Of a DNA stretch of 64,000 nucleotides, positions 8,064 through 54,224 are shown in pieces. The notes beneath the pieces were generated by a model that did not search any database, was not told the DNA's origin, and saw nothing but the letters and a program-made list of their open reading frames with translations. The DNA comes from Macrostomum hystrix (Eukaryota > Animalia > Platyhelminthes). Position 1 is the stretch's first letter, and each line of letters begins with the position of its first letter. Position numbers and translations under genes: made by a program. The DNA is taken from assembly GCA_950097015.1 (NCBI GenBank), contig CATNEN010000001.1, forward strand, positions 19,034,001-19,098,000. The letters run 5' to 3'.

Positions 8064-9005
8064 CCCGGTGGGACAGCTTTTTGGGGCGCAGGGTGGGGCG
8101 CCGTGCGCCCCGCTATACGCCTTCCCTTCCCGCCGCCTGGGCGCTGGGTGACTTTGCTATACGCCCCCGCTATACGCCCACCCGCCAATGGGGCGCAGGG
8201 TTTTATTAACATCACTTTTTCGCGGTTTTTTATCTTTTCGTGTAGTACACGTGACTTGTGGTTGCAGAAAAATATTATTTCACCTTTAACATGTCTAGTT
8301 GCTCTGAAATTTGGCAATATTGTTTGCATTATTTTCGAAATTTTCTTTCACGTATGCAAAAATAATTGGAGGAAGATTAATTCGCCATGTGCTACTATTA
8401 GTAGAAACGATAGGATACTGTTTCAGTCATATCCTATAGCTCATTCCTTCCGAAAGACCTGTACATGTAGACTGCAATTATATGACTCTGCATGACAACT
8501 TAGTGTAATAGCTAGCTAGTATATAAAACATGGTTGTTTCTAAATTTCTGTTTCCTCTACATTTATCATAGAGCATAGGGACTCAAAATTCGTCGAGATC
8601 AATCTGGATTAAAGGAGGTCCCAAAATCGATTCCGTGCCTTCCCTAGATTCCCTAGATTAGTAGGGTGAGAGGTAGATCAGTAGGGTGAGAGGGAGAGCA
8701 GGTAGGGTGAGTGGGGGATCAGGTAGGGTGAGAGGGAGAGCAGTAGGGTGAGAGGAAGTGTGGTAGTGAGATGCAGTAGAGTGAGAGGAAGTGTGGTAGT
8801 GAGATGCAGTAGAGTGAGAGGAAGTGGGGTAGTGGGATGCAGTAGAGTGAGATGAAGTGGGGTAGTGAGATGCAGTAGAGTGAGAGGAAGTGGAGTAGTG
8901 AGATGCAGTAGAGTGAGAGAAAGTGTGGTAGTGAGATGCAGTAGGTAATCCGAGTTGAATTGTATTTACAAATGTTCCCAGGTGTACAGGGAAGTCAGTT
9001 CTTTA
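8064..9005 (+). repeat. Left terminal/subterminal region
   Basis: Three GCTATACGCC motifs (8112-8180), an AGTAGGGTGAGA-type minisatellite and a ~59-bp unique segment (8947-9005). The minisatellite and unique segment are inverted at 53254-53563. Confidence 0.8.
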
Positions 9006-9033
9006 GCAGCAGGTCTACCGGCTCTGCACTGAG

Positions 9034-10944
9034 ATGCTCGCCGCCGCGGAAGCATGTATCCCCAAGAAGGTGTCCGCCAAAAATAAGCCCTATTGGGACG
9101 AAGAACTGGCCGCTGTCCGGGACGAAAGAAACCGGCTTAGGCAGAGTGGTAACGACCCAGAGACCCTGCAGGCCAAAAGTGCCGAACTTGCAAAACTCTG
9201 CGCGGAAAAGAAGGCGAAATTCTGGAAAGATTATGTCGACGAACTTCAAGAGAGCTCGGATCCCAAGAAGGTCTGGAACACCATCAAAACCCTAAGTGCG
9301 GGCAATAAAAACGAGGCACCCAACGAGATCCTCGTGATCGAAGGGAAGGAATTCCACTCGGACATGGACAAAGCCAACGCGTTCTGCCGGCACTATGCCA
9401 ACATTAGCAAGCTGAAGCATGACAAGAACGACCGCAGAACCAAAGTCCTCACCGCGAAGCGCCTAGCCGAGTACCCGAAGGGGGACCAAGATGAAGAACA
9501 AGACTTCAATTTGGGCGAGCTGAAAAGTGCCATCTCCAACATGGACGCCACCAAAAAGTGCGGGCCCGACGGCGTGGAGGTCGCCTTTTTCAAGCATCTC
9601 CCCCAGAATTGGCTCACCGCCTGGTTGCAGGTGTTCAACCGCTGCTGGCGAATTGGACACTGCCCGGGGGTCTGGAAGAAGGCCATCATTATCCCGCTGC
9701 TGAAAGATGGCAAGGATCCGCAAGAGTGTGGCAGCTACCGCCCTGTCAGCCTTACCTCGGTTTGTGTCAAGATCATGGAGCGCATGGTTCTAAACAGACT
9801 GTACTACTGGTTGGAGAAGAATAACATCATTCAACCGTGGCAAGCCGGCTTCCAACGGGGCCGCAGTTGTGAAGAACAAGTCGCACGCCTTGTCCAAGAG
9901 ATCCAGGACGGATGGGAAAAACATCCTCACTGGAAGACCATCGCCATTACCCTGGACTGCTCCAAAGCCTTCGACCGTGTGTGGAGGGCCCGGCTCATCG
10001 CGCGCCTGATGGACGAGCGTGTGCCAGGCCGTATGGTAAACTGGTTCGCCAGTTTTCTGGAAGGGCGGCAAATTGCAGTTCGCCTCGGAACTACTATTGG
10101 GAAGTGGCGACCCCTCTGCGAAGGTGTTCCGCAGGGAGCCGTCAGCTCCCCAGTCCTGTTTCTCCTGTACATTAACGATTGGAAAGACAAGATGGTCCCT
10201 AGTGTCTCCTATGGAGGCTTCGCTGACGACCTGAGCGTCTGGACCACTGGCCGCAATCTGAAGGAACTGCAAGAGCGCCTGAAGAAGGCTCTGGAGCTGA
10301 TCGAAAAATGGGCTGACAACCTGCGCATTGAGCTGAACCCCATGAAAACGGAAGTTTGCGTGTTCTCCCGTGACAAAGCGGATAGAGATTGTCGATTGGA
10401 CTTACATATCTGTGACCAAGCCATCAAACGCAGCGCGGCGATCCGCTACCTGGGTGTCTGGATTGACCAGGGGCTTCTGTTCGCTCGGCAAACCCAGGAG
10501 GCCTGCGACAAGATTGGCAAACGAACTGCCATCCTTCACGCCCTCGCCCATCGTGAATGGGGCTGGGACAGGAAGCTCCTCGCGTCCATCTATAAGGCCA
10601 TCGTGGAATCAGTGGTCTGGCATGCGGCGGCGGTCTGGATGCCCTGGCTACCCACCTGTCGGCTCGAGGACCTCGACTGTGCCCAGAGAGCGGCGCTGAG
10701 AGTAGTCACCGGCCTCCCGAAGAGAGCATCAAACGAAGCGGTCATACTCGAAGCTAATGTGACCCCCATTAGTATTGAAGCCAAAAGAAGAGCCCTGATC
10801 GCGGTGGAGAAAGCCATGCGCAGACCGACCTCGGACCCCTGGCGGCAGCTCTGCGAGCGCAAGACCAACGTCCGCCTTACCGCCAACAAAGGCCTCAGAG
10901 AGCAAGCTCGAGCCGTTGCGGAGCAGCTCCTCGACGGCCCGTGA
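9034..10944 (+). CDS. LINE reverse transcriptase (endonuclease missing; frameshifted from the RNase H part)
   Basis: Motifs GPDG, YRPVSLTS, QAGF, DCSKAFD, GVPQG, FADD and YLGV. Confidence 0.92.
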   Translation: MLAAAEACIPKKVSAKNKPYWDEELAAVRDERNRLRQSGNDPETLQAKSAELAKLCAEKKAKFWKDYVDELQESSDPKKVWNTIKTLSAGNKNEAPNEILVIEGKEFHSDMDKANAFCRHYANISKLKHDKNDRRTKVLTAKRLAEYPKGDQDEEQDFNLGELKSAISNMDATKKCGPDGVEVAFFKHLPQNWLTAWLQVFNRCWRIGHCPGVWKKAIIIPLLKDGKDPQECGSYRPVSLTSVCVKIMERMVLNRLYYWLEKNNIIQPWQAGFQRGRSCEEQVARLVQEIQDGWEKHPHWKTIAITLDCSKAFDRVWRARLIARLMDERVPGRMVNWFASFLEGRQIAVRLGTTIGKWRPLCEGVPQGAVSSPVLFLLYINDWKDKMVPSVSYGGFADDLSVWTTGRNLKELQERLKKALELIEKWADNLRIELNPMKTEVCVFSRDKADRDCRLDLHICDQAIKRSAAIRYLGVWIDQGLLFARQTQEACDKIGKRTAILHALAHREWGWDRKLLASIYKAIVESVVWHAAAVWMPWLPTCRLEDLDCAQRAALRVVTGLPKRASNEAVILEANVTPISIEAKRRALIAVEKAMRRPTSDPWRQLCERKTNVRLTANKGLREQARAVAEQLLDGP

Positions 10945-11893
10945 ACCGCTGGAATGGGCTCGTGCCCCACCGTGGCTGAATCTGACGCAAGCGAACCTAG
11001 CGCTTTTCGCCACCCTGTGTGAACCAGGCAGCCGGGAGGACGCTGTGGAGATCAAGAAAAAGGCGGCGCTCGACACGATCCGGACACGCTGCGGGACAGG
11101 AGCCCATTACTATACGGATGGCTCAGCGGCGGAGGGCACGACTAATGGCGGCGCGGCCTGGGTTTGTTTCACCTCGCCCGACTCAGAGGCGGTTGCTCGC
11201 TCTGGCCGCCAGCCAGTGGGCCGATGGTGCAGCTCCTTCGAAGCCGAACTGGTTGCCCTGGCGGCGGCGCTAGAGGACATCCGCGCGACTCAGCCCGACC
11301 AAGCCTCGATCTTCACTGACAGTCAGGCAGCCATTCGTGCCCTCTCCGCTGACCGCACCACCATGGACCCAAAGCTGGAGAACGTGAAGCGACTTGTCCG
11401 GGAAGTCCTTCAGCGCTCGCAGCTAACTATCCAATGGATCCCTGGCCACTCGGAAATTCATGGAAATAAAGTCGCCGATTTTGAAGCCAAGCAGGCCTCC
11501 CTCATGGACCAGAGCGCGGTGCCTATCTCGCAAGGGGCCGCGAAAAATCGCATTAGACGCGCGCTCAGGTATGAACCTGTCCTGACGGATCACCTGCTGG
11601 AAGTCTACAGACACCCGCTGATCCAGCACCAAGGTTGCAGGAGAGAACAGGTCTTGATCGCCCAGATCAGGTCCGGACACTGCCCGAGCTCGAGCTACTA
11701 CCAGCACCGCATTGGAGCAGTCGCGACCAGGATCTGCAGGCTCCGTGACGACCAGGTCGACCAGTTCCACGTGCTGAACTGCCCCGCTCTCGACATCACC
11801 CGGATTAACATTGGTTGCACCCTTATGGGGGACCTGGCCGATGGTCGTTTGGTGGCGCGACTTCTGGAGGCCCTGAATTGGCGCCCCCTGTAA
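10916..11893 (+). CDS. LINE RNase H + C-terminal zinc-knuckle-like region (continuation of ORF2 after a frameshift near 10935)
   Basis: Motifs YTDGS, AELVAL, IFTDSQAA, WIPGHSEIHGNKVAD, RSGH and HVLNCP. Confidence 0.88.
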   Translation: MRSSSSTAREPLEWARAPPWLNLTQANLALFATLCEPGSREDAVEIKKKAALDTIRTRCGTGAHYYTDGSAAEGTTNGGAAWVCFTSPDSEAVARSGRQPVGRWCSSFEAELVALAAALEDIRATQPDQASIFTDSQAAIRALSADRTTMDPKLENVKRLVREVLQRSQLTIQWIPGHSEIHGNKVADFEAKQASLMDQSAVPISQGAAKNRIRRALRYEPVLTDHLLEVYRHPLIQHQGCRREQVLIAQIRSGHCPSSSYYQHRIGAVATRICRLRDDQVDQFHVLNCPALDITRINIGCTLMGDLADGRLVARLLEALNWRPL

Positions 11894-11908
11894 GTCGCAC
11901 ACCGCATT

Positions 11909-12100
11909 CAACAACAACAACAGCGGCAACAACAGCAGCAGCCGCAGCCCAGCAGCCCCTGGCAGCTGCTGCCCACCACTGTGGGCCCGACCAGTGGTGC
12001 AGTCCAGTGGTGGAAGATGAAGGGAGGGGCCGGGGCGGCCACTAATTTCTCGCCGCCGAGGCCTCGGTGCCCTCCCTCCCGAGGACCGGGCAAGAAATAA
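11909..12100 (+). pseudogene. 5'-disrupted copy of the polyQ micro-ORF (paralog of 44348-44584)
   Basis: Reads QQQQ..PSSPWQLL..VQWWKMKGGAGAATNFSPPRPRCPP..KK*. The downstream 12100-12370 closely matches 44585-44855. Confidence 0.75.
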
Positions 12101-13069
12101 AAAGGTTTGTCTAAGCTACCTTTATGTGATACCTTTATTCCTCAATTCTTAATCATTAATCGTTCATTCTTTAAATAAGCGCTAGTAGTAAAATTATACC
12201 CGTTTGCATGTGTAAGTTTTCATTGACTGTGGTAAAACAAGATTTACTTTTTGCCATTATAGCACCATTTATCAAAATGCGATTGTCACACCACAATGCT
12301 AATGCAATATTACAACCTAGCAAAATTTACTCACATTCAATATGATTTTAGCCATAATGTCATACGTCGTGTCTTGTCGTGTTCATGTTTAAATTGAAAA
12401 TTGCATGAGCCATCCTCCAAGCTTTATAGCAAGTTTATCTGCTAATTTAAAGAAGCAGATAGCAACTGCGTACGAAGATAACCCCTCACTCCACCTTCAT
12501 GCTGTCCAATAACGAGCTGCTAACACACCTCGAAACCTCCCACTTCGTCATTTCAGACGCATGCATTTCATACCTGGAATGTATATTTGGAATATTTTGG
12601 AATACATCTTTGCTTGTTGTCTTCCTTTATTTCACTCATATTTATTTATTAGCTTGATGCACAGCCTAAATGTTTAGCTTCTTAGCTTTAGCTCAGCATG
12701 ATAACCAACATACGAGTATTTATCGAGCACTCCTTGCTTCGTGTTCCTGCACTTGCTTTGCTTGCCTGCTTTGCTACAATTCGTAGCTAAAGTACATTTT
12801 TTTCATTTCTACTAACATTTCTACTAAGCTGCTACTAACATTTACACTCCGACCCTTAAGCTAGCTCACCTTAAAGATTCGCATGCTTCCCATCTGATTA
12901 CAGGCAATCGTTATAGACAAAGATAAATATGTAAATTGGGTCTGAAACATTCCATATTTTTTCCAGACGTTCTCCATGAACACCTGACGCCTGGTACATG
13001 GTCAGGTGTGTCAAGAAACGGAAGCTTCGGATGACATTGATATTAGTGTATATTCTAAGACTGCTCCCC

Positions 13070-13230
13070 AGAAGTTCGAGCGTCATGAAACTGTTGCCGT
13101 ACAGTTCAGCGGCATAATAACTGTAAAATAACTGGTCGTCGAGAGAAATAAATTCGAAGATAAGTTTTTATTACTTAATAGACACAACAGGCATTTTGTA
13201 CGAGAGAAAAGCCTAAAGTGCCTTTATCAG
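13070..13230 (-). pseudogene. CACTA transposase relic
   Basis: TCATGAAACTGTTGCCGTACAGTT is shared with 32771-32794; AAELYGNSFMT here versus AAQLYGNSFMT in transposase A. Confidence 0.65.
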
Positions 13231-14474
13231 GAAACATGTATGCTCTTTTATAATTGGCTCCTTGAGCTTTCCCATTTTTAGTTCTGTAATTCACTGTTGG
13301 TCTGCTCATTCTCACTCTTCTTCAATTGCTTTGCATTTAGTACCCTGCAGCTGCAACTAATTCAGTTCTACAAAAAATTTCCGGTTCGGATGCAATCTGC
13401 CTATACTATGGCTTACATCCCACATGTATACAGATACTTAGTGTTTATTATTTTCTCCCCCTATGCATTCTTTCACACTAATTTTACACAAAATTAATCG
13501 CTCTAAATTAAGCAGCCACAGTCGGAATTATACGTTATACTAAACTGCGCACTAACTAAACTAAACTACGTTATACTATACTAAACAATAAATCAATATT
13601 CATTTTCGTTGACTCTTGCTTATCGAAATTCGAAAGTAGCTTGCTTTGCTAGCTTTTTAAACCCTTTGTGCATGTACGATATACGCCTTATAAATTGAAT
13701 TCCGCAAATGCGGAATTTCCGGATGTGGTCAAAGTGCAAATACAAAGCTCAAAGTACCTATAAACTTTAAAATCTTTGCCGATGGACAAATAGATATGCT
13801 CCAGCTGTATTTTACGCTTCACTTAGCTTGCACTTGATTACACTTCGTGACATTATTCGCACAGTAGCAATAGCGTTTCCATTTTCAATCTGTAAACTAT
13901 GTAACTGGTAAGCAGTAGCTCTAATAATTGTGTTTGGAAAAAAGGGAAATATTTGTAATAATAATTCAAGTGCTAAAAATTAATGCAGTATATCAAGGAA
14001 TAGCTAGAATAGCTACATGAATAAAATTAATATACATAGACATCGCTACCTATAAAGCGATCAATGTGCAAAATTCCCTCAAATGTGCCTTATCGAAAAT
14101 CAAGGTCCCTGTTCACAAATTTTGATTTGTGAACAAATCATTCGGCACATTCATGGGTGTTGCTGACCGGGTGGGGAGCACAGACTAATTAGATAAGGCT
14201 TTACTTCTGGGGGAGACCCATACAGTCTAGGTAGCCACGGTCAAAACTCTAAACATTCTTATCAGTTTTTTATTCTGCCGTTACCTCAGCTCTTTCGGCC
14301 TTGCAAGTTCTGTGACTATGTCAAAGAGCTCTATATGCCAACTGTTCCTAGAAGTCACTTTAATAACAAAGTAGTTTACGACAGAGGATACATAGTTATG
14401 CATATACACGGATGCAAGTTACGCAAAAAAACAAAACGAGTCATAGAAACATGTCTGTCTATCTAGTCTCGCAG

Positions 14475-15029
14475 TCATGGGTTCTTAACAAGAACGTCAC
14501 TGTCAATACTTTTACCAGCCGTGTAGTCGAACGTAAGGTCTGTGCCGGCTGAAACATATTGGGTTGTCACAAAATAAACGACGGGTCGGAGCCCCTGGTC
14601 GATGACAATGAACTTCGCTTTACAGTTGGGAGCAGTAGCAGAATGATTGAGATACCTCCCCAATCCATCGCTGTTGCTGGCGTCAACTACCCATAATTTA
14701 CTGTTAAATTTAAATTCAAATAGAAGCCAGTCAGAGTTGGGTTCAACTTCACGCCTTATCGCTTCCTGCTCGTTCAGCAGGATTCCGGCGAACTCGTCGA
14801 CATACGCACCGGCAGCTAGGTCTATTCTTGCGAAGGCGCCCAGTCCCTTCTCGCCCGCAGGTGCAACGGTGATCGCGGTGTCCGTCTTTCCGTTGATGCC
14901 CAGAACGCGTTCCGTAATATCTTTAGTGGTTGTCGGGGGACGATAATTGATGGTAGACCGGCTGAGCCTCCGAGCCGGCCTCGTCTTAACGGTTGGCACA
15001 GGCTCAGGCTGCGGGGTGTAGTTTAACAT
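14475..15029 (-). CDS. Intronless SET-domain lysine methyltransferase, PR-Set7/SET8 (KMT5A)-like, 184 aa
   Basis: Motifs KGLGAFA, DEFAG, VDAS, GRYLNHS, PNC and DLTFDY. ATG context is AAAACATG, with TATAAAA ~110 bp upstream (15136-15142 on the - strand). Confidence 0.9.
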   Translation of the reverse strand: MLNYTPQPEPVPTVKTRPARRLSRSTINYRPPTTTKDITERVLGINGKTDTAITVAPAGEKGLGAFARIDLAAGAYVDEFAGILLNEQEAIRREVEPNSDWLLFEFKFNSKLWVVDASNSDGLGRYLNHSATAPNCKAKFIVIDQGLRPVVYFVTTQYVSAGTDLTFDYTAGKSIDSDVLVKNP

Positions 15030-15340
15030 GTTTTAATTTGTTTTCTCATCCGTCTAAATCGAAATCTCCCCTTTAGAATCTAAATTCCCCAAAGAGAGAC
15101 AATTACGCAAAGAGAAACTTGGGCTCCTAAATCAATTTTATACAGCCACACCAATCGCTATTAATTGACGTACCTCTAATCCACATACGGCTAGGGCGAT
15201 GCGAAGCGATTGATCCACGCGTAATTCGCCCTCTTCCTCGCTGTCGGTGAAGGACAAATCGACGTTTCAGATGGGTTCAACTTCAGGGACGGCGCGGTTT
15301 TTAGTCTGGAAAATTGTGGTGCATAATTTTAATTTATCAA

Positions 15341-15557
15341 ACCTCTCACTCCACCTCTCACTCTACTTCTCACTCTTCCTCTCACTCTACTTCTCACTCC
15401 ACCTTTCACTCTACCTGTCACTCCACCTTTCACTCTACCTGTCACTCTTCTTCTCACTCTACCTCTCACTCTTTCTCCCACTCCACCTCTCACTCTTCCT
15501 CTCACTCCACCCTTCACTCCACCTCTGACTCTCCCTCTTTCTCCCACTCCACCTCTC
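15341..15557. repeat. 12-bp CTCACTCCACCT-type minisatellite (continues at 19400-19478 after a LINE insertion)
   Basis: Tandem units on both sides of the LINE. Confidence 0.9.
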
Positions 15558-18500
15558 TTGACTTACTTGACTTAGCTGCAGGGGGCATCTTCCCGGATGC
15601 AGCGGGGAGGCGTTGCCGCCCATTCCGCTAGCCCCTGGCGACCACGGGCAACTAAAGCTGCGGTGTCGCGCAGGGGGATCCGGTGGTGCCGGCGTCCGCA
15701 GCGCGGTCCTCCACCGGAGAGTCCAGGAGGTGGAGGGTTGCTCGCCCGGTGGCCCTCAGGTATCGGACGAGCTGGCAGATGTTCTCAGGCCTGAAAACGT
15801 CGGGGAGATCCGGGTTTGGGCCGAGATAGGTGAGCCTGTCCTGAGTGAAGGCGGGGCAGTCGCAAATAAAATGCTCTGCATCCTCAACATAGGAGAGGCA
15901 GAAGGGGCATTCCTCACTGCGGATTTTGCCTTGCAGGAAGCGGTGCCTGGCGAAACAGCCATGGCCAGAGAGGGCCATGGTAACTGCCCTGATGTCCTTG
16001 CGGTTCAGTCCAAGCAAGGCTTTGCGAAGGGCAGTGGAGGGACAAGGGACAGCAGCGCGAGACTGCCGACAATCGGCGGTATTGATCCATCTGTCCTTGT
16101 GCTTTGAGGCCACCCACGGGTTAATCCGAGTGTTGACGACGGCGGTAGGGGTGGAGACCACAGGCACGGGGCCAAAAAGCGAACCCGTCGAACCGGCCTT
16201 GGCGAGGCTGTCGGCCAATTCGTTACCAGGGTGGCCAGAGTGCCCTGGAATCCACCTTAGGGACACCTTGTTGTGGGTCCCTAAGGGGTTGAGTTGCTGC
16301 GCAGTCGAGGACTGTGCGCGAGCAGGTGTGCGTGCGTCCAAGGGCATGGATCGCCGCCTGGCTGTCCGAGTGGAGGAAGATTTCTGCTCCGTGGACGTTT
16401 TGGTTGATCAGCTCCAGGGCGCAGGAGCTGATGGCGAGAACTTCGTTCTGGAAAACGGTAGAGTTTATGCCGGTGTGCTGGGAGAAGGTCGCCACAGTTT
16501 TCCCTCCGGACATAATGCAGTAGCCGAAACCAGAGACCGAGTTGATTTGCGTCGGTGAACGTACTTCCTGGCGAGGCGGAATGCTGGTTTTGAATTTTTG
16601 CGGTGGGCACAGCGTCGACGGGATTCCGTCGGAGAGAATTTTGAGACCTCCTGCTGCGTCCAAGTCCCGTAGGCTGAGGTCACCATGGGGCTGGAGGTTC
16701 CGCTTGCTGAAGGCAAGTTGCTTTCGGATGGAGATGCCCGCGTCCAGAAGACGACGAGCCGTCTTCATCGCCTCCCCCTTGATAAAAAGATCTAAAGGGG
16801 GAAGGTCCAGGAAGGCATTCATGCCAGCGAAGGGAGTGGAGGGTGCCGCACTCATGATGGCTCGACAAGCACGGCCCTGCACCTTGTTTAGGGCCACCAG
16901 GACCCCTTTGGTCTCCAGGGCACTATTCCAGATGAAGCCGGCAAAAGAGATGGCCGGTCTTACAATGGTAGTGTAAATCCACCAAAGACGGCGGGGGGTG
17001 AGGCCCCAGGTAGCGCCGAAGGCTCTGCGGATCTGCGCGAGCGTCGCAAGAGCTTTGCGGGTTTTGAATTTGACGTGAGGTGTCCAGCTCAACCTGTGGT
17101 CGAGGATGACACCTAAGCATCTGGTTTGCTTCTCCATGGCGATGGGTTTGTCATAGAGAAGGAGAGGCTCAATCCTCCAGTTTCGTTTGCTCGTGAACAT
17201 AATGGCGACGGTCTTGGACTCAGAGACTTTGAGGCCGCAGCCATTGGCCCAGCGCTCGGCACGGTGGATGAAAGCTTGCAAAAGGTCTCTAAGGACCGGG
17301 GGAGACGGTCCGGCCACGGTGGCGGTGACGTCGTCAGCATAGCCGATTTTTTGGACCGGGTCCGGGTCAGGGCTGCAGAGCAGCTCGTCCATGACAAGGT
17401 TCCAAAGGATCGGACTGAGAACGCCACCCTGCGGGCCTCCCTTCTGGACATTCACAGAACGGGAGTGGCCAAGCCGGTGCGAGGTGGCAGTTCGGTGAGA
17501 GATCATATACATGATCCAGCGGGTGAGGTGCTCGTACGTAGCCCGGCGTTCCAGGGCTCGCCTAAAGGCTCCGAAAAGCACATTGTCGAAGGCACCATCA
17601 ATGTCGAGGAAAAGCGAGAGAGCAAAACCGGTGCCAAGCACGGCGCGCTCCAGCTTGTCGACAATGACATGCAGAGCACCTTCGATGGAACGTCCAGATC
17701 GAAAAGCGTGCTGGTTGGCGGAGAGCGGGGAGTTCCTCAGCTCAACGTGAAGGAGGCGCCAAAGAACAAGCCTTTCAAGCAGCTTAAGAAAGAAGGATGT
17801 TAAGCTGATGGGGCGGAAGGCTTTGGTGGAGTGGTAGTCTCCCTTCCCAGGTTTGGGGATGAAGACGATAGTGGCTACCTGCCAAGACCTGGGTACGTAC
17901 CCGAGGGTGATACAGGCCTTGAACAGGTTGCAAAGGAGGCCGAGGAACCTGTCATTTTTCACAGGAGGGTTCCTTGCGCCGGAGGGTTCCAAGCGCTGGG
18001 TTCCACCAGGGAGCGGATTTTTTGCCTTTGTAGGCTTTAAGGGGGCAAGAGGTTTCATGAGCTGTCAAGATGGTCATGCTGAGTAGATCAGCCAGATCGT
18101 CCACTTCTTGACAGGTGGCAGGAACAACGGATTCTAACTGGTTGGTCTGGCGCTTCACGGATTCCGCAAAGGCCGTCCAGTCAGTATTCCGGGCGTTCCT
18201 TTTCCACAGAATACCAGGCTTGGAGTAGGAGCTTAGCAACCGGAAACGAATGAAGCGATGGTCAGACAGAGATTCCTCTTCGTCCCACACCTGCCAGTTC
18301 CTAATCAGAGGGATCAGGCCCTGAGAGGCGAGGGTGGCGTCAAGGACCTCCGTCCATCGCCCATTGTCAAAGGTGGGTGTGCCACCCGAGTTGCAGAACT
18401 CAATATCGGTGGTGCAGATGTAGGCAAGGAGATCCTCGCCTCTGCAGTTTGAGGTAACACTGCCCCAGTGGGTGTGGTGGGCATTTATGTCGCCTGCCAC

Positions 18501-37213: not shown

Positions 37214-37239
37214 CCTGTCTTATGTCGATTCTCATCCCT

Positions 37240-41206: not shown

Positions 41207-41231
41207 GTTCCAGAATGTTCTAGAATGTTCT
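41207..41231. promoter_or_regulatory. Heat-shock element (five alternating nGAAn units) upstream of the HES gene
   Basis: TTC-CA-GAA-TG-TTC-TA-GAA-TG-TTC at exact 5-bp spacing, ~70 bp upstream of the TATA box. Confidence 0.8.
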
Positions 41232-42823: not shown

Positions 42824-43810
42824 ATTTCATAAACAGCAGTTTCAAGGCAAACAACTGCTCATGCAGTATCAAAACCAATAGCTCAAGGCAAACTGCTGTG
42901 CGTGCATTATCAAAACTGAGAGCTCAAGCAACCAGCAATTGTGTGTTGGGTATCTTGGGCTGGGTTGGGCTAACACTGAGAAATGATTATGTACTCAAGC
43001 ACTTACCATAGCCTTTAATCATATGTGATTAGTTCTCATATGCCCTTAGCTATACCATGAGAGTGAAGACAACCAGAAGCCACAATTCCAGCTAGTGAGC
43101 CAGTGTGATAAAGACCTGGTAAAATAAAGTTGATAAATAAATAGTCATTATAAGGAAATTTCATAGCAAAACTGTACCAGACCAAATAACTCTAGTGTAC
43201 ACTAGGATCACTTATATTGCTTGTAGAAACAAGAAGAGAAGAGGAGAAAAAAGGACAGGAGAGAAGAGGAGAGGAAAGAAGAGCAGAGGAAAGGAGGGGA
43301 GAGGGGGAGAGGAGAGAAGAGGAGGGGGAGAGGAGAGGAGAAGAGGAGGGGGAGAGGAGAGGAGAAGAGGAGGGGGAGAGGAGAGGAGAAGAGGAGAGGA
43401 GAGAATTTCATAAACAGCAGTTTCAAGGCAAACTACTGCTCATGCAGTATCAAAACCAATAGCTCAAGGCAAACTACTGTGCATGCATTATCAAAACTAA
43501 GAGCTCAAGCAACCAGCAATTGTGTGTTGGGTATCTTGGGCTGGGTTGGGCTAACACCAAAATGATTATGTACTCAAGCACTTACCATAGCCTTTAATCA
43601 TATGTGATTAGTTCTCATATGCCCTTAGCTATGCCATGAGAGTGAAGACAGCCAGATGCCACAATTCCAGCTAGTGAGCCAGTGTGATAAAGACCTGGTA
43701 AAATAAAGTTGATAAATAAATAGTCATTATAAGGAAATTTCATAGCAAAGTTATTTACCTGTACCAGACCAAATAACTCTAGTGTACATTGGGATCAATT
43801 GTTATTGCTT
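42824..43810. repeat. ~400-bp direct duplication (42824-43222 / 43406-43810) separated by a GA-rich tract
   Basis: Near-identical copies starting ATTTCATAAACAGCAGTTTCAAGG. Confidence 0.9.
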
Positions 43811-44347
43811 TGCAGGAGCTAACCAACAATTTAGCAAATCTAAATTGGGTATCTAGCAAACACTTTACAACAAATGATTAGCCAAGCCTTACCAGTTCTC
43901 AGATGCCAGCCTGAAGATAGCAAGCAAAGCCACCATTCCAGCTTGTGTGATAAGGACCTGTTAAGATGTACTACACCTCACTACAGTTTGCTAAGATTTT
44001 ACCATCATTTTAACTGCTTTCATTTTCTTGAATCCTTAATTCCTTTCAGGCTCTTCAATTATTTGAATTATTTGAATTTCACTTCTCCTTTAAGCTTTCA
44101 GCTGAAATGCCTCTGGCATCATCCATGAGCAATGAGCTGTAGCTCAGGAGCATTGAGCTAAAAGCTAGGTTTCTCTAGCTAGTGAAACCAAGCCATACAC
44201 TTTTACCATCCTTTTAACAACCTTAAATCCATTTGAACATTTTAAACACCCTTTGATACACTTATTTTACTCTTATTCACTTCTACTTTTGCTTTACCTT
44301 TACTTTTACTTATTTACTTTTCAATTTTCAGACTTTTAGGCTTGAAT

Positions 44348-44369
44348 ATGGATCGTGATAAAGAGGCAA

Positions 44370-44403
<34 letters not shown>

Positions 44404-44584
44404 ACAGCAGCAGCAACAGCAGCAGAAGCAGCAACAGCAGCAGCCCAGCAGCCCGTGGCAGCTGCTACTCACCATGGTGGACAACATGAAGGTCCAGTGG
44501 TGGAAGGAAAAGGGAGGGGCCGGGGCGGCCACCAACTTTACGCCACCCAGGCCCCGGTGCCCTCCCCCAGCAGCAAAAAAATAA
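44348..44584 (+). CDS. PolyQ micro-protein (78 aa), function unknown
   Basis: Open ATG..TAA frame after a pyrimidine tract and AG; the stop overlaps AATAAA. Paralog at 11909-12100 with a frame-preserving indel. Confidence 0.5.
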
Positions 44585-45375
44585 AGGTTTGTCTAAGCTA
44601 CCTATATGTGATACCTTTATTCCTTAATTCTTAATCCTTAATCGTTAATTCTTTAAATAAGCGCTATAGTAGTAAAATTATACCCGTTTGCAGGTGTAAG
44701 TTTTCATTGACTCTGGTAAAACATTTACTTTTAGCCATTACAGCAACCATTTATCAAAATGCGATTGTCACACTGCAATGCTAATGCAATATTACAACGT
44801 AGCAAAATGTACTCACATTCAATATGATTGTAGCCATAATGTCATGTCGTGTCTTAGCATAAGCATATAGCCTATGCTCTTGAGAACATTTCGGAATTAT
44901 GATGTGGTGTTGATTACCCGAGACTAGTTTTTTATAATTTCCTTTGCTTATTATGGCCAAGTGATATCACTTGTTTATTTAATTATGCTTGCTGCTGAAG
45001 AACCAAGTCGAAGCCACTATCGCATGTAAAATATTGGTTTAAAAAGAATGTCGAAAAGAACAGTGCAGGTACTTGCTACGGTGCTAGGTGCTAGGTGTGT
45101 GGGCATGTGGAAAGTAATTTATTGTTTTTTCTGTCTATTTTTCAGATGTAATGATGCGGGAGTTTATCATGACACAATTGTATGAACAGGATAAATTGTA
45201 TGTCTCATATATACAGCTTAGCCAAGACAAACGATTTGTAATTTTTTTGTGCTTTTTGTACAATTTTAAGATGCGATGATGCCAAAAGTAATGGAGTATA
45301 CATTCACCCAGTTCTGTGAACGGGATAATTTTTTTATGTCCAGTAACATGTATGTCTGTAACAAAAAGCAAAAAT

Positions 45376-45445: not shown

Positions 45446-45881
45446 GGACACTTGTCTTATCTGCTTCGAATTTCCATAGAATAGTGGATTTTAAGTTGCT
45501 ACCTTGCCCCACCCCAGAGGCAAGTCAAGTCAAAGTTAAGGGTAAACAAAGTAACCTATTTCTTATTGCACGCCAGACCAAACGCCCTTCAGCTTATCTC
45601 CGTCTGTTGTGGTCCCTGGTCGGCTCGTCTGAGTTGCAAGCGAATTTGGGAAGCAGAAAATCGGCGGCCGTTTTGTCAACATAGGTGGGTGGATTCGGCC
45701 TAGGGCTCAAGTTCCCACACTATTTGCTCCTTATCTCTCCTCACGTCGATAAGGGCGCAAACCTGTCCTGAACAATTTGCAAAGTTTCCTGTTTGCTAAA
45801 CCCAAATCCAAGTTTAGAGTTGTGTAGAGTAGATAAGAAAATTTATGAACATGTGGCACTCGTAGAAGGGGATAAACAAGG

Positions 45882-47869
45882 CTAGCTTTCCTGTCCCGTT
45901 AGCGGAATGACGTAAAAAAAGTCGTCATTTTGGGTCGGTCTACTAAGAGCTTTCGGAAGCAGCCAACATTTTTGCCCTGGGCGGCCAGTTGCGATTTCGG
46001 ATGTTAGGCGGTAAACTCCAATCCTAAGTGCCAGAGAGTCGTAAGGATAGTTGTAGACATTGTCGAATTCCTGGAGCACTCTGCCACTTACCATGCCGTC
46101 CGGTTTGACTTCATCAATATGAATGCATGTCGTCCCAACGAAGCAGCAATTGTCACCCTTCTTCGTGCTGAATTCTATAGTTGTTTCTGCTGGCTGGCTG
46201 AGGTACATATTTCGTACTTGTAGTACTTGACAAACTGAATGAGCGGCGACATGCCTGGTGACTTTGACCCTTCTCTTGATTGCTCCCAGATAGCTTTCGA
46301 ATGGAAATGTACTAAAATTATTTAAGTTACCTAGCCTTCTAAAAAACTGGTCGAGGTGAAGAAGTGCATGAATATTGTAGCTAATTGATTTTTGGCCAAA
46401 TATCTTTGACATCTGTTCGACGAATACCTCGATGCAGCTTTTCGCAGAATCCCATAGATTAGCATACCTTTCCGTGGAATAGCAGTATAGGGCGAAGTGC
46501 AGTAGGAGAAAAGTTTTGTAAAACTGTTCCTTAACATATCCCTTAAAAATTATTGGTCCCAGGTAAAGAATAATTTTTCTGAACTCTGTCGCCTTAAAAT
46601 GGTTAAGACACTTATCTATGCGGCGAGGTCTTCTCTGGAAATTAGACGGAGTCCAGCTGGCAATACCGGCAATGATGTCCGACAAAGACTTCATATTCCT
46701 GCGACTAAAGCGGCAGCCTCCTTCTCCAAAATACAAGTGCATTAACTTCCTTACTGCTCCCAGACAAACGGCATGTTGAAAATCCAGAGGAAAACAGTTG
46801 ACGAAGTCAATGTTGGGCAGGTCCAACAGTGGTGACTTGATGACCGCTCCTGTGGCGTCTTTTTTCTGGTTGTTCTCTACTAGGGATCGGTACGCTTCCC
46901 CACATCTATTCTGGCCAGCAGTTACGGAAAATGTCACTCTGCCTTCAGCACGCAAGCCCACAGCTCGACAGTAACTGCATCCTAAGTAGCTTGTGACCCA
47001 GAGTGCACATTAAAAAACTGCGGGCAGGGGTGTCGCAGACAAAATAAATAGTGGAGAACATGATGCTGATTTTCTCACTGATTTTGACTGGACCAGACAG
47101 AAAGCTTTTTGCCTCTTGGCAAAACTGTTGCAGGTACTCCTGTACTGGTGGCTTTCCAGTGCCGGCCCAAACAGCCACTGGAAAAGGCTTAGCGAATGCG
47201 GATTTAATTTTCATTAGGAGTGGCCATAGACTAATCGTACTGGATCGATAGAGGGGAAGTCCGTCACTGTTTAGAAATGCGTCGAACTTGTAACACTTGG
47301 TTGAACCTTCATGCAGCAAATTTTCTGGTCGCAGTGTCAACAAATTCTTCGAAAGTAGTTGCTGCAGATTCTCCAGAATAGAAATATAGCGAAAGTGCCC
47401 GTCTCCAATGGCCACCAAGTCACCAGTAGGACAGTTTTCTCTGGCCAGGCGTTCAAATGTTTTGTAAGTTTTTGTGACAGGCAAACCAATGTCGCGTAAA
47501 CCCGCAAGTAGGAAAGCCATGGCGTCACGGGGAATGTTGTATGTAGAAAAGAACAAAACAAGGAGTGCCTGTAGCCTTACCTCCAAGGGCCGATTGTCTT
47601 CATCCTTTTCGCTGTCCATGTCGTCATCGCTTTGAGTTTCCTGCTCAAACTCGTCGAATTCTACCCTACTAAAATATTCTTCCGTCTCCATGTCCACATC
47701 GCCTTGACTTGCCGACTGCCCTCCACTGCCCTCCACTGCCCTCCACTGCCGACTGCCCACTGGCTGAGGGGACACTGCTGGGCCTCTCACTCTCAGCTTC
47801 TTCTCTAAACATGGCCAACAAGCTCTTGTTTGTCTCTCTCCTAATACTCCTGCTCGACATGCCATGCAT
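45882..47869 (-). pseudogene. CACTA/EnSpm-type transposase B, intronless, frameshift near 46991
   Basis: Motifs NSDGLP..LWP, FVCDTPAR, LGH|SYLGCSYC (frame jump), DFQHAVCLG, FKATEFR, YNIHALLH and FSTFPFES. Confidence 0.88.
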
Positions 47870-48212
47870 GTTTTGTCTTAGTCTTAGTCTTGGGCTTAAT
47901 ATTAGTATTAGTCTTAGTCTCAGTATTAGTCTTAGTCGCAGACTCAGTCTTAGTATTAGTCGTAGTCTTAGTCTCTCTTTTAACGCACTTTTAACTGCTG
48001 CAATACGAATATTCGGAAGCTATTCGGCGCCAATGGCACAATCGGTAGCTATCGGTGGTTGAGGATTTTTCATAACTAACCAATGAGCGCGCGACGAGCC
48101 TTCCCACTGTCTGGGCCGTGCAGTTTGATCTGACATATATTAAAGCTCTAGCTTATCTTTACACTCCCCTAACCTCCTGTCGTTCTCAAAGTTTCAAACT
48201 TTTGAAGCAACC

Positions 48213-50309
48213 ATGAAGTTCTTGATCGTATTCGAGGCCGACAGGCAGGTTATCGAAATTGAGGAAAGTGATTTAGTTGAATGTGAAAAGTTGAAAAGTC
48301 TGACAGTAACTGAGTTGTCACTGTTAAGAGACAGTGAAGAGAGGTGGCACTGCACGGCCAAATATGCAGGCTGTGTCTACGCTGCTGAAGTCCTCCAGGT
48401 ATACATGGATGACACTCTGGAGCCACCCAGCCTAAGCTTTGTCCGCAAGCTGATTCAGAAGAAACGGACAATTGTCGAAATAATTCGGCAATTGAAACCG
48501 AGGGTGCTCAACGCTGAAGATATGCGGCGGGCGCGACGCGATTTTCAGTGTGTTGTAAGTTACATTTTTTCTGTTTAAAAGTCTCATCCTAGATTCTCAT
48601 CCTAGATTCTCATTCATCGATTATCTTAAATTCTAATCCTAGATTATCATTCTAGATTATCATTCTAGATTCTCATCCTAGATTTTAATCCATCGATTAT
48701 CCATCGATTATCTTAGATTCTCATCCTTGATTCTGATCCTAGATTCTCATCATCAAGAACCCTCATATATTTTGCTGTTTAAAAGTCACGTTATTCATTT
48801 TTAGTTACATTCTGTTTTGTCTGTCCACTGTCTCTTTTTCTCCATCTCCATACGCACACATCTACCTATCTTACCTATCTACCTATCTCTATCTACCTAT
48901 CGAATCTCAATAAATCGATAATGAATAATCAATCACTAACAACGATTATCCACCAAAATTGGATTATCTAATTACAATCACTATTATTGATAATCAATCA
49001 ATATTGATAATCATCCAATGCCAGTAACCCCAACCTTTTCCTGACTTATTTATCCTCCAACTTATCCGACCTAACAGGACGTATCCACTGGTTCTGCGTC
49101 CGACACCGACGGCTTTTTTGGATGTTCGGAGGAGCCAGTTGAATCTGAAGCGCCGATTCTAAAGCTGCCCTACGTAGACGTGCCGTCTACTGTCGCAAAG
49201 CTGGTGCCACTGCCGTCTACGATTCCGAAATCTGCGTCCACAGCATCTGCAAAAGCCGCGGCAGCTAAGGCGGCAGCTGCAAAGGCAGCAGCGGAAGCAG
49301 AGGCAGCAGCGGAAGCAGAGGCAACAGCGGAAGCAGCAGAAGCAGCGGAAGCAGAGGCAGCAGCGGTGGAAGCAGAGGCAGATACAGAAGCAGCGAAAGC
49401 AGACGATGCCGAGGTGACTTCAGCAGTTTTCCGAAACATCCCGGGCATCTCCATCACACGACTGGAGCAGCAAATACAGTCGGAGGTGGATTTCCCATTA
49501 GGAAGCAATCGCGGCCTTCTGTACATCGCCCTGCTCGCATTGCGCGAGAGTACCCAAGCGAATAAGAAGATGGAAGCCAGACAGGAGAAACTAGCCAACG
49601 AGCTGGCCTCCGTTAAGGAGGAAGTGCAGCAACTGCGCCTGTCGATAGCGAAAGACCAGCAGCCAGTGCAACAGCTCCAGTTATGGCCCTTCGACTCTTG
49701 GGAGACGTATGTCCACTACGCGGAAAACACGCCTGCAGAGTGGACTTACCAGTTAAAACAAGCCCTGCCCAACCTAAAAACGGCGACTGTCGCAGCCACC
49801 TTCCGCTCGTGGTTAGACACCTGCTTGACTTCAGAGATGCAGATTAAGGTTAATTACAGCGGTGTAGGCCTTCGCGCAAAATGCATCCAGACGGAGTCGT
49901 AACGCGGTTGTCCGACACGGAACTTGGGTTCAGGAGCGTCCTTTTGCGACATGTCCAGAATGCCGCCACCAGCATCTACGGCCCGACTATCACAGTGGAC
50001 GCCGTCGAATGGATGACGGCCACGTTCGTCGGTAGCCGCATCGTCGACATGCTCCATCGAGCCAAGGACCGCCGAGGAGCCAGACCGCATCGACGCCTGT
50101 CAGTTTCAGGTCCAGGGTCATCTGCCACGAGTTCGCCAGCCGTCGCCCCGCCAGCCGGCGGTAAAAGACCTGGCTCGCAGCTCAGTCATGCCTCGCAAAA
50201 AAGGCATTCTTTGCAGCCGCATCACAGTCGAGCAGCTCCAACTGAGCTGTTGGAGTGCTCCGATGAGGAGGCTGATTGCCTGATGAGCTACATGACTGAG
50301 GAGGACTAA
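48213..50309 (+). CDS. CACTA ORF2, DUF4806/BEN-like DNA-binding protein; exons 48213-48554 and 49078-50309, frameshift at the A-run near 49880
   Basis: In-frame GTAAGT/CTAACAG splice, Ala/Glu linker, coiled coil, then WPF..VNYSG..LHRAKDRRGAR. Divergent from transposase B. Confidence 0.75.
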
Positions 50310-50639
50310 GTCCCAGGTCCCTACCAGTTGCGGGACCTGGTTGATTTGTTATAAAAGATAAGTAGCGTTTGAATTTCATGTCTTTCATAGTCATATCTTA
50401 TAATGGAACAAAAACACAGAAGCATCTTGTCTTTTGCATCAATTACATAATGAATAATTTTTTCCAGTTCTACCATTGTGCCGGGACGTCTACCGGTTGC
50501 GGGACCTGGTTGACTGGCCATAAAAGATAAGTAGCGTTTGAATTTCATGTCTCCAATGTTTAATCTTATGCTCGATCTTGTATTTCAACTCATTCTGAAT
50601 CTCATGTTTGATCTTATGCTCAATCTCATATTTCCGCTT

Positions 50640-51160
50640 ATTAAGAATCTTTGCTTCATCTCGTTTACAATCTCAAATCTTATGTACCTCAATCCATATA
50701 CATCTCATATCTCATATCTTTGCTTCATCTCGTTTACAATCTCAAATCTAATGTACCTCAATCCATATACATCTCATATCTCATATCTTTGCTTCATCTC
50801 GTTTACAATCTCAAATCTAATGTACCTCAATCCATATACATCTGGATTCTATCTCACTCGATCTCTATTCTCTGCATTGATGTACATGTGTATGTAAACA
50901 TGTAATTTTACAGTAAACCTTGCACATACAACTAGTCGTGCATACTTTCCAATTTCTCCAGCAAACCAGTCAGCCGGTTACGCGACGACATGGTCGACTG
51001 GCGGAGGTGGCATGACAGGGACAACTGGCGCAGGTGGCATGACAGGGACAACTGGCGCAGGTGGCATGACAGGGACGACTGGCGGAGTTGGCACAACTAG
51101 GACGACTGACTGGCGCGCAGGTGGCTTGACAGGGACGACTGGCAGAGCTGACAGGGACAA
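50640..51160. repeat. 69-bp tandem repeat (50640-50845) and 27-bp tandem repeat (50995-51160)
   Basis: Units visible. Confidence 0.85.
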
Positions 51161-51223
51161 AATGTGGACTAATTTTCGTGCTTTGTATTTACTTAAAAAC
51201 GTATACCGTACTGTCTTTGCATG

Positions 51224-52078
51224 TGTAGTGAGCCGTAGCTTAGGTGGCTCCCTTTTCCCGGCACTGAGTGGCTGTCCGGCCCGCCCTCTCTGGCGCTGTC
51301 CGGTCTGCCCTATTTGTCCTCCCTTTCCCACGGCAGCGCTTGCACTTAGAGTGTGTTGTCTCCCCCAGGGATGAGTCATCACCTCTTTGTCCCGCGCTGG
51401 CCAGTCCCTTTCTTTGTGTGTGCGTTTGTCTGCACTCAGTCAGCGCATGATTCTCCTCATGTGACTGGCCTCTCTCTTTGTCTCCTAAAGTGCACGTAAA
51501 CATGTTTACTGCACTTGGGGCTTTGATTATGGGACAGGAGCCTACGTAGGAGTGACGTTTTGGCGCCACTGACGTCAGTTGCTATTTTTAGAAATCACGT
51601 GAGCCCATCACGTGCTTTCTAACGTAGCACTGACCCTATGGGAGGCCCCTGCCTATAAAAGAAAGGCCCCGCTCCTCTGGTTCTCTAACCCTTCTATCCC
51701 TTGTTTAAACCTTCTCTTGATAACCGTCGTTCTTAACTTGTTCTCTGTGCCATCAGTGTCTAAGTTTCCTACTTCAGTCTCTGCATGTGACTGCTCGTAA
51801 GCTCAGTTCTGGCTAAGTCCCGAAACTAACTTAGCCTTCCACCCCACCATCCGAGCTACGCAGGACACTGACAGCCTGTAATTGCAACTGGAACTCTGCA
51901 CTGTGTGCTTCTCGAGACTTTGTGACTTCGTTTCTTTCGGGCCAAGGATCCTTCACCTCACCGAAGGCAGAAGTCCTGACGCCCTGGTGGCAGCGCTACT
52001 ACTACACTACCTGATATTCTTGGACTTCATATTGGAGTCCGCCGGATCCTCATTGTTAGCAGGACGACCGGTACAACA
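51224..52078 (+). mobile_element. Solo LTR (855 bp)
   Basis: TGTAGTG...GTACAACA ends, TSD CATG and TATAAAA at ~51654. An empty-site duplicate lies at 52624-52687. Confidence 0.92.
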
Positions 52079-52099
52079 CATGATGACACTCTAAGTCTA

Positions 52100-52615
52100 A
52101 AACTCTCTCTCTCCACCATCTCTCTATATCTCACCATCTCTCTCCATCTCTCTAAATCTCTCTATCTCTCTCTATATCGCTCTATCTCTCTCTATATCTC
52201 TCCATCTCTCTCTAAATCTCTCCATCTCTCTAAATCTCTTTATCTCTCTCTAAATCTCTCCATTTCTCTCTAAATCTCTCCATCTCTCTCTAAATCTCTT
52301 CATCTCTCTCCATCTCTCTAAATCTCACCATCTCTCTCTATCTCTCTAAATCTCTTTATCTCTCTCTAAATCTCTCCCTCTCTCTAAATCTCTTCATCTC
52401 TCTCTAAATCTCTCCACCTCTCTAAATCTCACTATCTCGTTCCATCTCTCTCTAAATCTCTTCATCTCTTTCCACCTCTCTCTAAATCTCTCCATCTCTC
52501 TCTAAATCTCACCTCTCTCTATATCTCACTATCTCTCTCTATATCTCACCTCTTTCTAAATCTCACCATATCTCTCTATATCTCTCCATCTCTCTCCATG
52601 TCTCTCTATATCTAA
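52100..52615. repeat. CT-rich degenerate microsatellite
   Basis: (TCTCTCTAAA/TCTCTCCA)n. Confidence 0.92.
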
Positions 52616-53160
52616 TTGTATATCTTTGTATTTACTTAAAAACGTATACCGTACTGTCTTTGCATGATGTCACTCTCAGTCTAAAACATTGCAATATAAA
52701 TGATGTCTGTAGTTTCGTTACTCTTCTTTTTAATCATGGCTTTTCCCTTTCTGAATGCGCTTTATAACATGTTTCATATGCATATTCAGCATATTCAGGA
52801 ATAATGCTGCTCTGTGCGACCGATTCGCTTTGAAATTGATAAAAAATCTGTACCTTTAGCTGCGTCAAAAGTATTCAATGAGACTAGAAGAGACATATTC
52901 GTAAACCATTTATAGCGGTGACGAATAGAAAATTTACATGAGCATGTTCAATTTTATTTATTTAAAGTGATTGACGCTTTATATATACGGCGTGCATACA
53001 ACAAAATGAAACATACGTATGAAAAGTACATGGTCAGGAGGGAGGGGGCAGCGTGGCGAGCGGAGCTGCTGGGGCAGGAGCGGAGCTGCTGGGCAGGAGC
53101 GGAGCTACTGGGCAGGAGCGGAGCTGCTGGGCAGGAGCGGAGCTGCTGGGGCAGGAGCGG

Positions 53161-54224
53161 AACTAATGCGAAACTAAAAATTTAAATTCTTTTATTTGAT
53201 CTCTCTCTGACTTATCATGTCATTAAAGGCATTAATAAAATTAATTAAAACTTTAAATAACTGACTTCCCTGTACACCTGGGAACATTCGCAAATACAAC
53301 TCAACTCGGATTCCTGCGAAATCTACTGCATCTAACTACCACACTTCCTCTCACCCTACTGCTCTCCCTCTCACTCTACTGATCTCCCTCTCACCCTACT
53401 GCTCTCACTCTCACCCTACTGCTCTCCCTCTCACCCTACTGCTCTCCCTCTCACCCTACTGCTCTCCCTCTCACCCTACTGATCTCCCTCTCACCCTACT
53501 GCTCTCACTCTCACCCTACTGCTCTCCCTCTCACCCTACTGCTCTCCCTCTCACGCTACTGCTCGGTGTCCCAATAGATTTGAGCACAGTTTATCGAGTG
53601 GGATTCAATTGAAAATCAATCTAGAAATGATTTCCTACACGACTGAGTTGGTTTCATGATTTCAAATGATTTCCACTCGAACTTATTAACCTGGAAAGTC
53701 ACCTAGAAAATTTTATATTGACTCTGACTATGTCAGTACACTATATGGCTGTCGTCGGTGTCCCAATAGATTTGAGCAGTTTATCGAGTGGGATTCAATT
53801 GAAAATCAATCTAGAAATGATTTCCTACACGACTGAGTTGGTTTCATGATTTCAAATGATTTCCACTCGAACTTATTAACCTGGAAAGTCAAAGCTTAAA
53901 AAATACAGCGCAGCCTACTAACAGTAGACTTTGAGGATATGCCCCGAATTTAATTTACCCTTCTCACCCACCTCCCACCGGCGGGATCCCACCGGTTTGG
54001 CTATACGCCCCGCCGGCGGGGCGCTTGGCCAAACCGTACGCCTCCCCACCGGCACCCGGCGGGAGGGCGCATAGTGGGGCGTACAGAGGGGCGCATAGTA
54101 AATGCACCTAACGGCCGTGGACTAGCCGGCCCCAGCTCACGGTAAAAATTAGACGGCTAGCCCAGGTCACCTCACCGTGCCATGAGTCCGGCTAGACGAG
54201 TGCAGCTCATGAGCTCCCTGTGGG
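53161..54224 (-). repeat. Right subterminal/terminal region
   Basis: Inverted homology to 8660-9005 and 39160-39667. Motif clusters CTATACGCC/GGCGCATAG, TCCCACCGG and CTAGCC. Ends TCCCTGTGGG. Confidence 0.75.

Follow-up and report, generated by a model that had tools for sequence, protein, structure and literature searches.

The window analysed here is a stretch of 64,000 nucleotides from the flatworm Macrostomum hystrix, corresponding to C1:19034001-19098000 of the 220-Mb, 42-contig assembly that was searched for related copies. On its minus strand it holds two genes for CACTA-type transposases, a gene for a protein with a SET domain and a gene for a short Hes-like protein ending in WRPW, and these lie between two subterminal repeat arms and are interspersed with unrelated nested repeats (Table 1). 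The initial annotation had read positions 8064 to 54224 as one giant transposon carrying chromatin and transcription regulators as cargo. We found that this idea holds for a family of elements, present at many loci with different flanks, and fails for an intact 46-kb unit at this locus. The family is a genuine one of very large cut-and-paste DNA transposons, 9-44 kb in length plus mini-derivatives, and we put at about 0.8 the probability that the sequence from 8064 to 54104 is a decayed, chimeric and heavily nested copy of it, the family being of CMC type in the animal form that starts with CCC.

The left end of the copy coincides with a sharp family boundary, as the initial annotation had proposed: position 8064 opens a 12-bp terminal inverted repeat (TIR), CCCGGTGGGACA, and matching starts exactly here in more than 10 loci with unrelated flanks. 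Genome-wide, this terminal 12-mer occurs 82 times, compared with 12 for the reversed control. All 17 of the plus/minus end pairs that were extracted carry a perfect 12-bp TIR, and identical 2-bp flanks are present in 13 of the 17, where chance would provide them in 1/16 per pair; these target site duplications (TSDs) are TT, AC, TA (four times), TG, GG, GT, TC, AA, CT and AG. Canonical copies terminate in ...AAATGTCCCACCGGG, the last 10 bp of which, TCCCACCGGG, are the exact inverse of the left terminus, and in one subfamily a left/right pair of end variants shares a longer TIR of 20 bp. At least four subterminal end types (A-D) are combined variously among the copies, whose structures were for the most part inferred from match coordinates only. 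The large members measure 9.3, 11.5, 15.8, 16.5, 17.4, 22.4, 23.4, 24.2, 26.7, 33.3, 34.3, 37.4 and 43.8 kb, and there are mini-derivatives of 561, 144 and 70 bp that consist of the two family ends only, two of them with a matching 2-bp TSD, and that would serve as natural substrates for transposition assays. TIR-bounded copies include C1:3506459-3543857, 9009410-9036087, 14180058-14203495, 17794322-17803647, 19372164-19416013 and 27086569-27103949, C33:5132352-5165673 and C38:21951122-21966876, and copies of family 2 lie near C1:15.90, 18.15 and 18.58 Mb. The family is unevenly spread: contig C1, 12.5% of the assembly, holds 51 of the 82 terminal 12-mers and nearly all Hes, SET and transposase copies as well, a concentration that suggests, and bears on, either local hopping or the evolution of a repeat-rich chromosome.

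Two further features of the ends were confirmed. The motif CTAT(A/G)CGCC occurs six times in the 64 kb, against 0.43 expected, and only at 8113-8178 and 54001-54098, at most 120 bp from the two proposed ends; and the inverted subterminal homology between 8655-9005 and 53254-53564 (78-93% identity) is real, arising from tandem units of 33 and 20 bp. The right end itself, placed at 54224 with a flanking AA, could not be upheld. From 54105 onward the window enters another repeat, family Z, more than 15 copies of which, 91-100% identical, all begin at 54104/54105, and the supposed end, CCCTGTGGG followed by AA, sits 120 bp within it; the AA duplication is a coincidence. The B-type arm of other copies matches the window only to 54094/54104, and the element in the window stops at ...AAATG (54104), so that the 10 bp TCCCACCGGG of the right TIR are absent and, of the two TIRs and the TSD that mark an intact element, the right TIR is wanting. 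The lost terminal 10-mer was also not found on C1 in the next 280 kb (19.04-19.37 Mb); the right terminus has been lost and not merely displaced by a nested insertion. With another repeat as the right flank, the empty-site junction predicted by the initial annotation is therefore meaningless.

The interior of the copy is as disturbed as its right end. Nested unrelated repeats, namely two LINE-like elements, a gag-protease retroelement and repeat X, make up about 18.5 of the 46 kb (~40%). The first LINE-like element occupies a breakpoint of the host element, where the arm homology of other copies stops at 9005; the second has the same 12-nt array on either side; and repeat X is uninterrupted in other loci, with 20210 joined directly to 27858, the intervening gag-protease retroelement being present also in copy D. 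What belongs to the family can be recognized by its recurrence elsewhere. The segment 11909-13472 recurs in copies A, B, D and F, and 19593-19872 matches the interval between SET and transposase 1 in the copies at C1:17.82 Mb and 19.407 Mb. Copy A (C1:9009410-9036087, 26.7 kb, TSD AC) and copy B are colinear with window positions 8064-8900, 39159-44855, 12093-13058 and 45702-53161; for copy A the matching pieces are 8064-8900, 39159-44855, 12309-12897, 45702-48400 and 49241-53161. In the window, a SET module of family 1 and a transposase module of family 2 are joined to a second part of family 1, the latter running from Hes through transposase 1 to the B arm.

It can be asked whether such a structure was ever a single transposition unit. 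Possibly two independent truncated elements stand head to tail, the first running from the A end through SET to transposase 2, with its far end lost, and the second from the 190-bp units through Hes and transposase 1 to the B arm, with its near end lost. The sharp breakpoint at 39159/39160, which joins modules of two subfamilies, each with its own transposase, speaks for this, as do the CAG-rich duplication (11909-12375, the first 470 bp of the family-1 segment, and 44405-44855, 86% identical) and the 190-bp units just beyond the breakpoint, which in other copies lie 250-450 bp from a terminus. Against it, the junction retains nothing that resembles a terminus, and a single element recombined between nested repeats would look alike. 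We give the two elements an even chance, and for the remainder of the span we lean slightly towards two truncated elements side by side over one rearranged element. The missing right TIR, the frameshift in transposase 1, the later insertions and the joined modules contradict an intact 46-kb unit, and because of them the copy is immobile as it stands. The practical result is one of annotation, in that this is a dead composite copy, unsuited as a reference element.

Table 1. Features of the window, and related features elsewhere in the assembly
Feature	Position	Strand	Remarks
A-type terminal arm	8064-9005	+	TIR CCCGGTGGGACA; three CTATACGCC motifs; 33-bp tandem array 8655-8970
Nested 5'-truncated retroelement without long terminal repeats (non-LTR)	9006-11908	+	RVT_1 E=3.8e-36; RNase_H E=2.7e-15; no endonuclease
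Internal family-1 segment	11909-15568	-	CAG-rich segment, 12375-13472, SET ORF, 12-nt array 15319-15568
SET open reading frame (ORF)	14478-15032	-	184 aa; TATAAAA at 15135-15141, ~110 nt upstream of ATG
Nested non-LTR retrotransposon, repeat family D3	15569-19501	-	ORF1; Exo_endo_phos_2 (EEP) E=3.9e-16; RVT_1 E=7.8e-30; RNase_H
SET-to-transposase spacer remnant	19502-19869		19593-19872 matches at 80-82%
Repeat X, 4.1 kb	19870-20210 and 27858-31617		At least 15 copies at 92-99%; ends sharply at 31617
Gag-protease retroelement, 7.65 kb	20211-27857		Splits repeat X; gag-asp_proteas E=5.4e-5, under the Pfam cutoff
Family-2 module with transposase 2	31622-39159	-	91-94% nt identity in at least 8 loci; homology stops at 39159/39160
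Transposase 2	33693-34868 and 32301-33422	-	Pieces ~270 nt apart; at least 9 copies at 96-99% aa identity
Arm-proximal arrays and Hes region	39160-44855	-	95-96%, colinear with copies A, B and D
190-bp units, within Hes region	39159-39538
25-bp array, within Hes region	39883-40653
GA-rich duplicated 410-bp segment	within Hes region
Hes-like ORF	40730-41098	-	122 aa; TATAAA ~40 nt upstream of ATG
CAG-rich (polyQ) ORF	44348-44584	+
0.85-kb segment	44856-45701		Without match in copies A-F
Transposase 1 region	45702-53253	-	98.4% to copy A; also unannotated ORFs on the + strand, 27-nt repeats and TC-rich array
Transposase 1	45885-47877	-	Frameshift near 46985-47000, giving ORFs of 310 and 375 aa
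110-aa ORF	49570-49902	+	No Pfam match
B-type terminal arm	53254-54104	+	20-bp array; two 190-bp units; CTAT(A/G)CGCC motifs; final 10 bp TCCCACCGGG missing
Start of repeat family Z, outside the element	54105-54224	+	First 120 bp of Z
Mini-derivatives	C37:487885-487954; C24:1973458-1973601; C1:8066369-8066929		70, 144 and 561 bp
2.19-kb unit in copy A	20214-22405; 24708-26895; 29163-30000		Positions in the extracted sequence of copy A
Z end pairs	C25:9637800/9669429; C26:1249527/1280868; C7:10975971/11007876

The two CACTA-type transposases of the initial annotation proved to be paralogs, 40-57% identical by tblastx; their genes were searched as separate ORF pieces. Transposase 1, frameshifted here, is elsewhere a single intact ORF of 665-689 aa in a single exon. 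For transposase 2, the gap between its two pieces may be an intron, since other copies share the two-piece layout. Both proteins present the same order of motifs, DG...WP, CDTPA, C-x2-C, H-x3-H and FP(F/Y)E, with DG..WP, CDTPA, CSYC, HALLH and FPFE in transposase 1 and D218, D293, CPYC, HVLLH and FPYE in transposase 2, which amounts to the CMC signature D-D-C2C-H3H-E. In 38 homologs, taken from a family that numbers 4574 proteins, the motif columns vary little or not at all. A C(2)C / H(3-4)H signature characterizes the CACTA/EnSpm-Mirage-Chapaev(-Transib) clade (PMC12730594), and DG...WP is motif I of the Transposase_21 region in animal CACTA-like elements (PMC1636069). The closest proteins, 55-80% identical, come from Macrostomum lignano and are named 'DUF4218 / Transposase domain-containing'; in transposase 2 itself, DUF4218 (PF13960) matches at a sub-threshold E=1.9e-4 to 2.8e-4, and among the 38 homologs DUF4218 matches 4 and Transposase_21 one, with one homolog having a precomputed PF02992. 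The termini agree, in that they start with CCC, not CACTA, generate a 2-bp TSD and are followed by subterminal repeats on both arms. With the signature, the CCC TIRs, the 2-bp TSDs and, as the sole Pfam matches, DUF4218 and Transposase_21, both below the curated cutoffs, we assign the family, with moderate to high confidence, to the animal CCC type of CMC elements. As this family shows, units of 20-40 kb are within the reach of CMC transposases. The frame of transposase 1 opens with a CxxC...CxxC pair (CMAC ... CWPC, 47877-47780), which may form a zinc-finger DNA-binding head. A pair of 'ORF2' genes had also been claimed; tblastx of the regions beside both transposases returned nothing of the kind, and 20 further neighbouring ORFs contained no Pfam family, only low-complexity noise, in a search by which a divergent protein could be missed.

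Both accessory genes lie on the transposase strand, Hes near the A end and SET just downstream of the transposase. The presence of both ORFs, each with a TATA motif upstream, was confirmed, as was that of the 110-aa ORF and the polyQ micro-ORF. The SET ORF matches Pfam SET at E=1e-12; intact copies, 71-100% identical, exist in at least 14 loci, among them those of a second subfamily (~80% identical), in which SET invariably comes after transposase 2. Family 1 has, on a single strand, transposase 1 followed at 2-3.5 kb by SET, as at C1:14.18, 17.82 and 19.41 Mb. No homolog of it was returned at E<=1e-5 from an index of 5.8 billion proteins, by a word-based, length-limited search that is not proof of absence. 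The Hes-like basic helix-loop-helix (bHLH) ORF matches Pfam HLH (E=4.6e-9) and HES-1 (E=1.2e-9) and ends in the terminal WRPW; it gave no match to the Orange domain, the Hairy-type proline of its basic region is replaced, and we regard the protein as Hes-like and not as a full member of Hairy/E(spl). It is intact in at least 15 loci with 95-100% aa identity, and by coordinates 9 of the 13 TIR-bounded copies contain it, at a distance of a few kb from one of the termini, which is the A end, ~5-6 kb away, where that is present. SET, Hes and transposase recur together at C1:19372164-19416013 (TSD TA), where the transposase ORF has 642 aa. Hes and SET are thus multicopy within a family whose ends are shared by many loci, and because many of their intact copies lie inside TIR-bounded elements with different flanks, they are transposon-borne and not single-copy host genes. 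What was found is thus not the pattern of single-copy, syntenic genes and of ends peculiar to one locus by which the initial annotation would have been refuted.

How the element works can only be proposed in outline. The transposase would bind the TIR and the subterminal repeats and excise the whole unit, which would be reinserted by a staggered cut of 2 bp. Help to the element may be the reason why the accessory proteins have been kept, and their most likely role would be to modulate chromatin or transcription, whether at the element itself or in cells in which it is mobile, by Groucho recruitment through WRPW and lysine methylation by SET. We tentatively propose, as a reading that falls short of probable, that an active giant CMC lineage in macrostomid-type flatworms owns a Groucho-recruiting mini-Hes and a stand-alone SET methyltransferase, with a third SET type in the sister family Z, and that these proteins set chromatin and transcription in the elements' favour, as an animal counterpart of the fungal TET/JBP and oomycete SET transposons. 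Several findings weigh against our main reading, that of a decayed copy of a CMC family with accessory genes: 4 of the 17 end pairs have no matching TSD; the two Pfam families are always below their curated cutoffs; no conserved second (TnpA-like) ORF, as a strict En/Spm definition would include, is common to both transposase modules; the codon-position signal in SET, described below, rests on 12 listed sites; and among four young Hes copies, with 4-10 differences, the ratio of nonsynonymous to synonymous changes (dN/dS) is ~1, which gives no sign of constraint on Hes.

The last point would also be expected if the accessory genes were passengers without a role, captured once and intact-looking because the copies are young. 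The replacement of the Hairy-type proline in the Hes basic region and the absence of Hes or SET from some family copies fit that explanation too. Against it stands the behaviour of SET, which is open across lineages 71-96% identical, including the second subfamily at 80%, has kept the catalytic motifs GxG, NHS and FDY, and differs among its paralogs mainly at silent positions (of 12 listed differences, 7 are synonymous and 8 at third positions; p ~0.02); Hes, for its part, is kept even in the short non-autonomous copies of 9-17 kb. Cargo without function is a possible explanation, and one that we would not call probable. It is very unlikely that the two genes belong to the host, as ordinary genes or segmental duplicates in a repeat-rich region: the TATA-like promoters, the complete ORFs and the concentration of copies on one contig are what host genes might show, but the number of intact copies, the many that lie between perfect TIRs with 2-bp TSDs and unrelated flanks, the fixed position and strand relative to transposase and A arm, and the distance to the nearest other paralogs in the genome (43-44% identical for Hes, 32-45% for SET) all contradict it. 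Least likely of all is a single intact element that spans 8064-54224, is bounded by a CCC...GGG TIR and an AA TSD and owns all the genes enclosed, since, correct as its left end is and although the family makes 2-bp TSDs and TCCCTGTGGG followed by AA at 54215-54226 agrees with the canonical end at 7/10 positions, 54105-55300 is another repeat, other copies end 10 bp past 54104, the nested repeats have boundaries of their own, and a rescue would need Z copies always to be preceded by a B arm, a pattern not seen in their coordinates.

Compared with known systems, the family with its Hes and SET genes shares features with several without being any one of them. Plant En/Spm elements have CACTA termini, 3-bp TSDs and a second gene, TnpA, produced via alternative splicing. 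Our family resembles them in its CMC-type DDE transposase, its subterminal arrays, the large size of its members and the many derivatives with internal deletions, and is unlike them in that no TnpA counterpart was found. Closer are the animal TRC elements, SmTRC1 of the flatworm Schistosoma mansoni and its CACTA-like relatives in Tribolium and Aedes, which have TIRs starting with CCC, 2-bp TSDs, internal tandem repeats and DG...WP (PMC1636069). SmTRC1 is, however, ~4.7 kb long, its TIR measures 54 bp and no cargo has been reported for it (PMC1636069), whereas the elements described here have a 12-bp TIR (20 bp in one subfamily), extend over 9-44 kb and carry Hes-like and SET genes. Unusually large EnSpm elements with extra ORFs have been reported from a red alga (PMC6431247), alike in size and in having such ORFs and different in host.

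An epigenetic enzyme as accessory gene has its parallel in the TET/JBP genes of certain fungal DNA transposons (KDZ, Plavaka, EnSpm and others, some of them CMC(T)), genes that have been proposed to counter silencing; these transposons encode a DNA dioxygenase in place of a SET lysine methyltransferase, belong to another kingdom, and have no transcription-factor gene reported (PMC12730594). In Phytophthora, the HarbingerS and MuDR families have been described as carrying genes for SET histone methyltransferases (Kojima and Jurka 2014, as cited in PMC12730594), and there, as far as that citation goes, the likeness is a stand-alone SET gene inside a cut-and-paste transposon, while the transposase superfamilies are others and the host is an oomycete. 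By ESM features, the 184-aa SET ORF has as its neighbours clusters of SET-only proteins, 150-190 aa long, from giant viruses, bacteria and protists, a lead only; unlike these, the best solved matches at the sequence level are the SET domains of KMT2D (E=5e-12) and SETD8/KMT5A (E=3e-10), in the range of 1e-10 to 1e-12, and the two score alike. SET- and TET-carrying transposons being already known in oomycetes and fungi, what is new here is an animal CMC family with a SET gene and a mini-Hes repressor, and we found no literature report linking a DNA transposon with a WRPW protein. Should the cargo act on behalf of the element, an animal family of DNA transposons would come equipped with a transcriptional repressor and a histone-type methyltransferase of its own. 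The idea of epigenetic counter-measures encoded by transposons, drawn from fungi, oomycetes and plants, would then hold for metazoans as well, in a tractable system with transgenic laboratory flatworms among the relatives.

Some minor observations concern the repeats in and around the copy. Arrays of the GAGTGAGAGG type, with 33-, 12- and 20-bp units, occur at 8655-8970, 15319-15568, 19372-19501 and 53322-53564, that is, on both arms and flanking the second LINE-like element. The two LINE-like insertions are each found within or beside an array of this kind, which may reflect a target preference. The nested gag-protease retroelement includes a 2.19-kb unit with fixed ends (window 25668-27857) that is found alone three times in copy A and at least twice in copy F, and that may be a non-autonomous derivative preferring this element as target. 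Outside the left end, by ~0.8-1 kb, a 0.9-kb sequence (6420-7290) is 93% identical to one at C1:12.39 Mb that lies equally far outside the left end of another copy, and this flank is repetitive. Positions 1-5000 of the window are a satellite of ~21-bp units, CCCACACCCATCTACTGT-like, with an extreme GC skew of -0.76, and yield spurious long ORFs.

Repeat Z continues from 54105 through 64000 and beyond the window, and elsewhere it has an inverted partner of ~100 bp about 31.5 kb away. There, ~8 kb inside, Z copies enclose SET ORFs of a third family, which have 184 aa and share 33% identity with the SET ORF of the window, and Z looks like another family of giant SET-carrying elements. Within the window, overlapping ORFs of Z contain a proline-rich stretch that is encoded at 58882-59216 by four 83-bp units in tandem.

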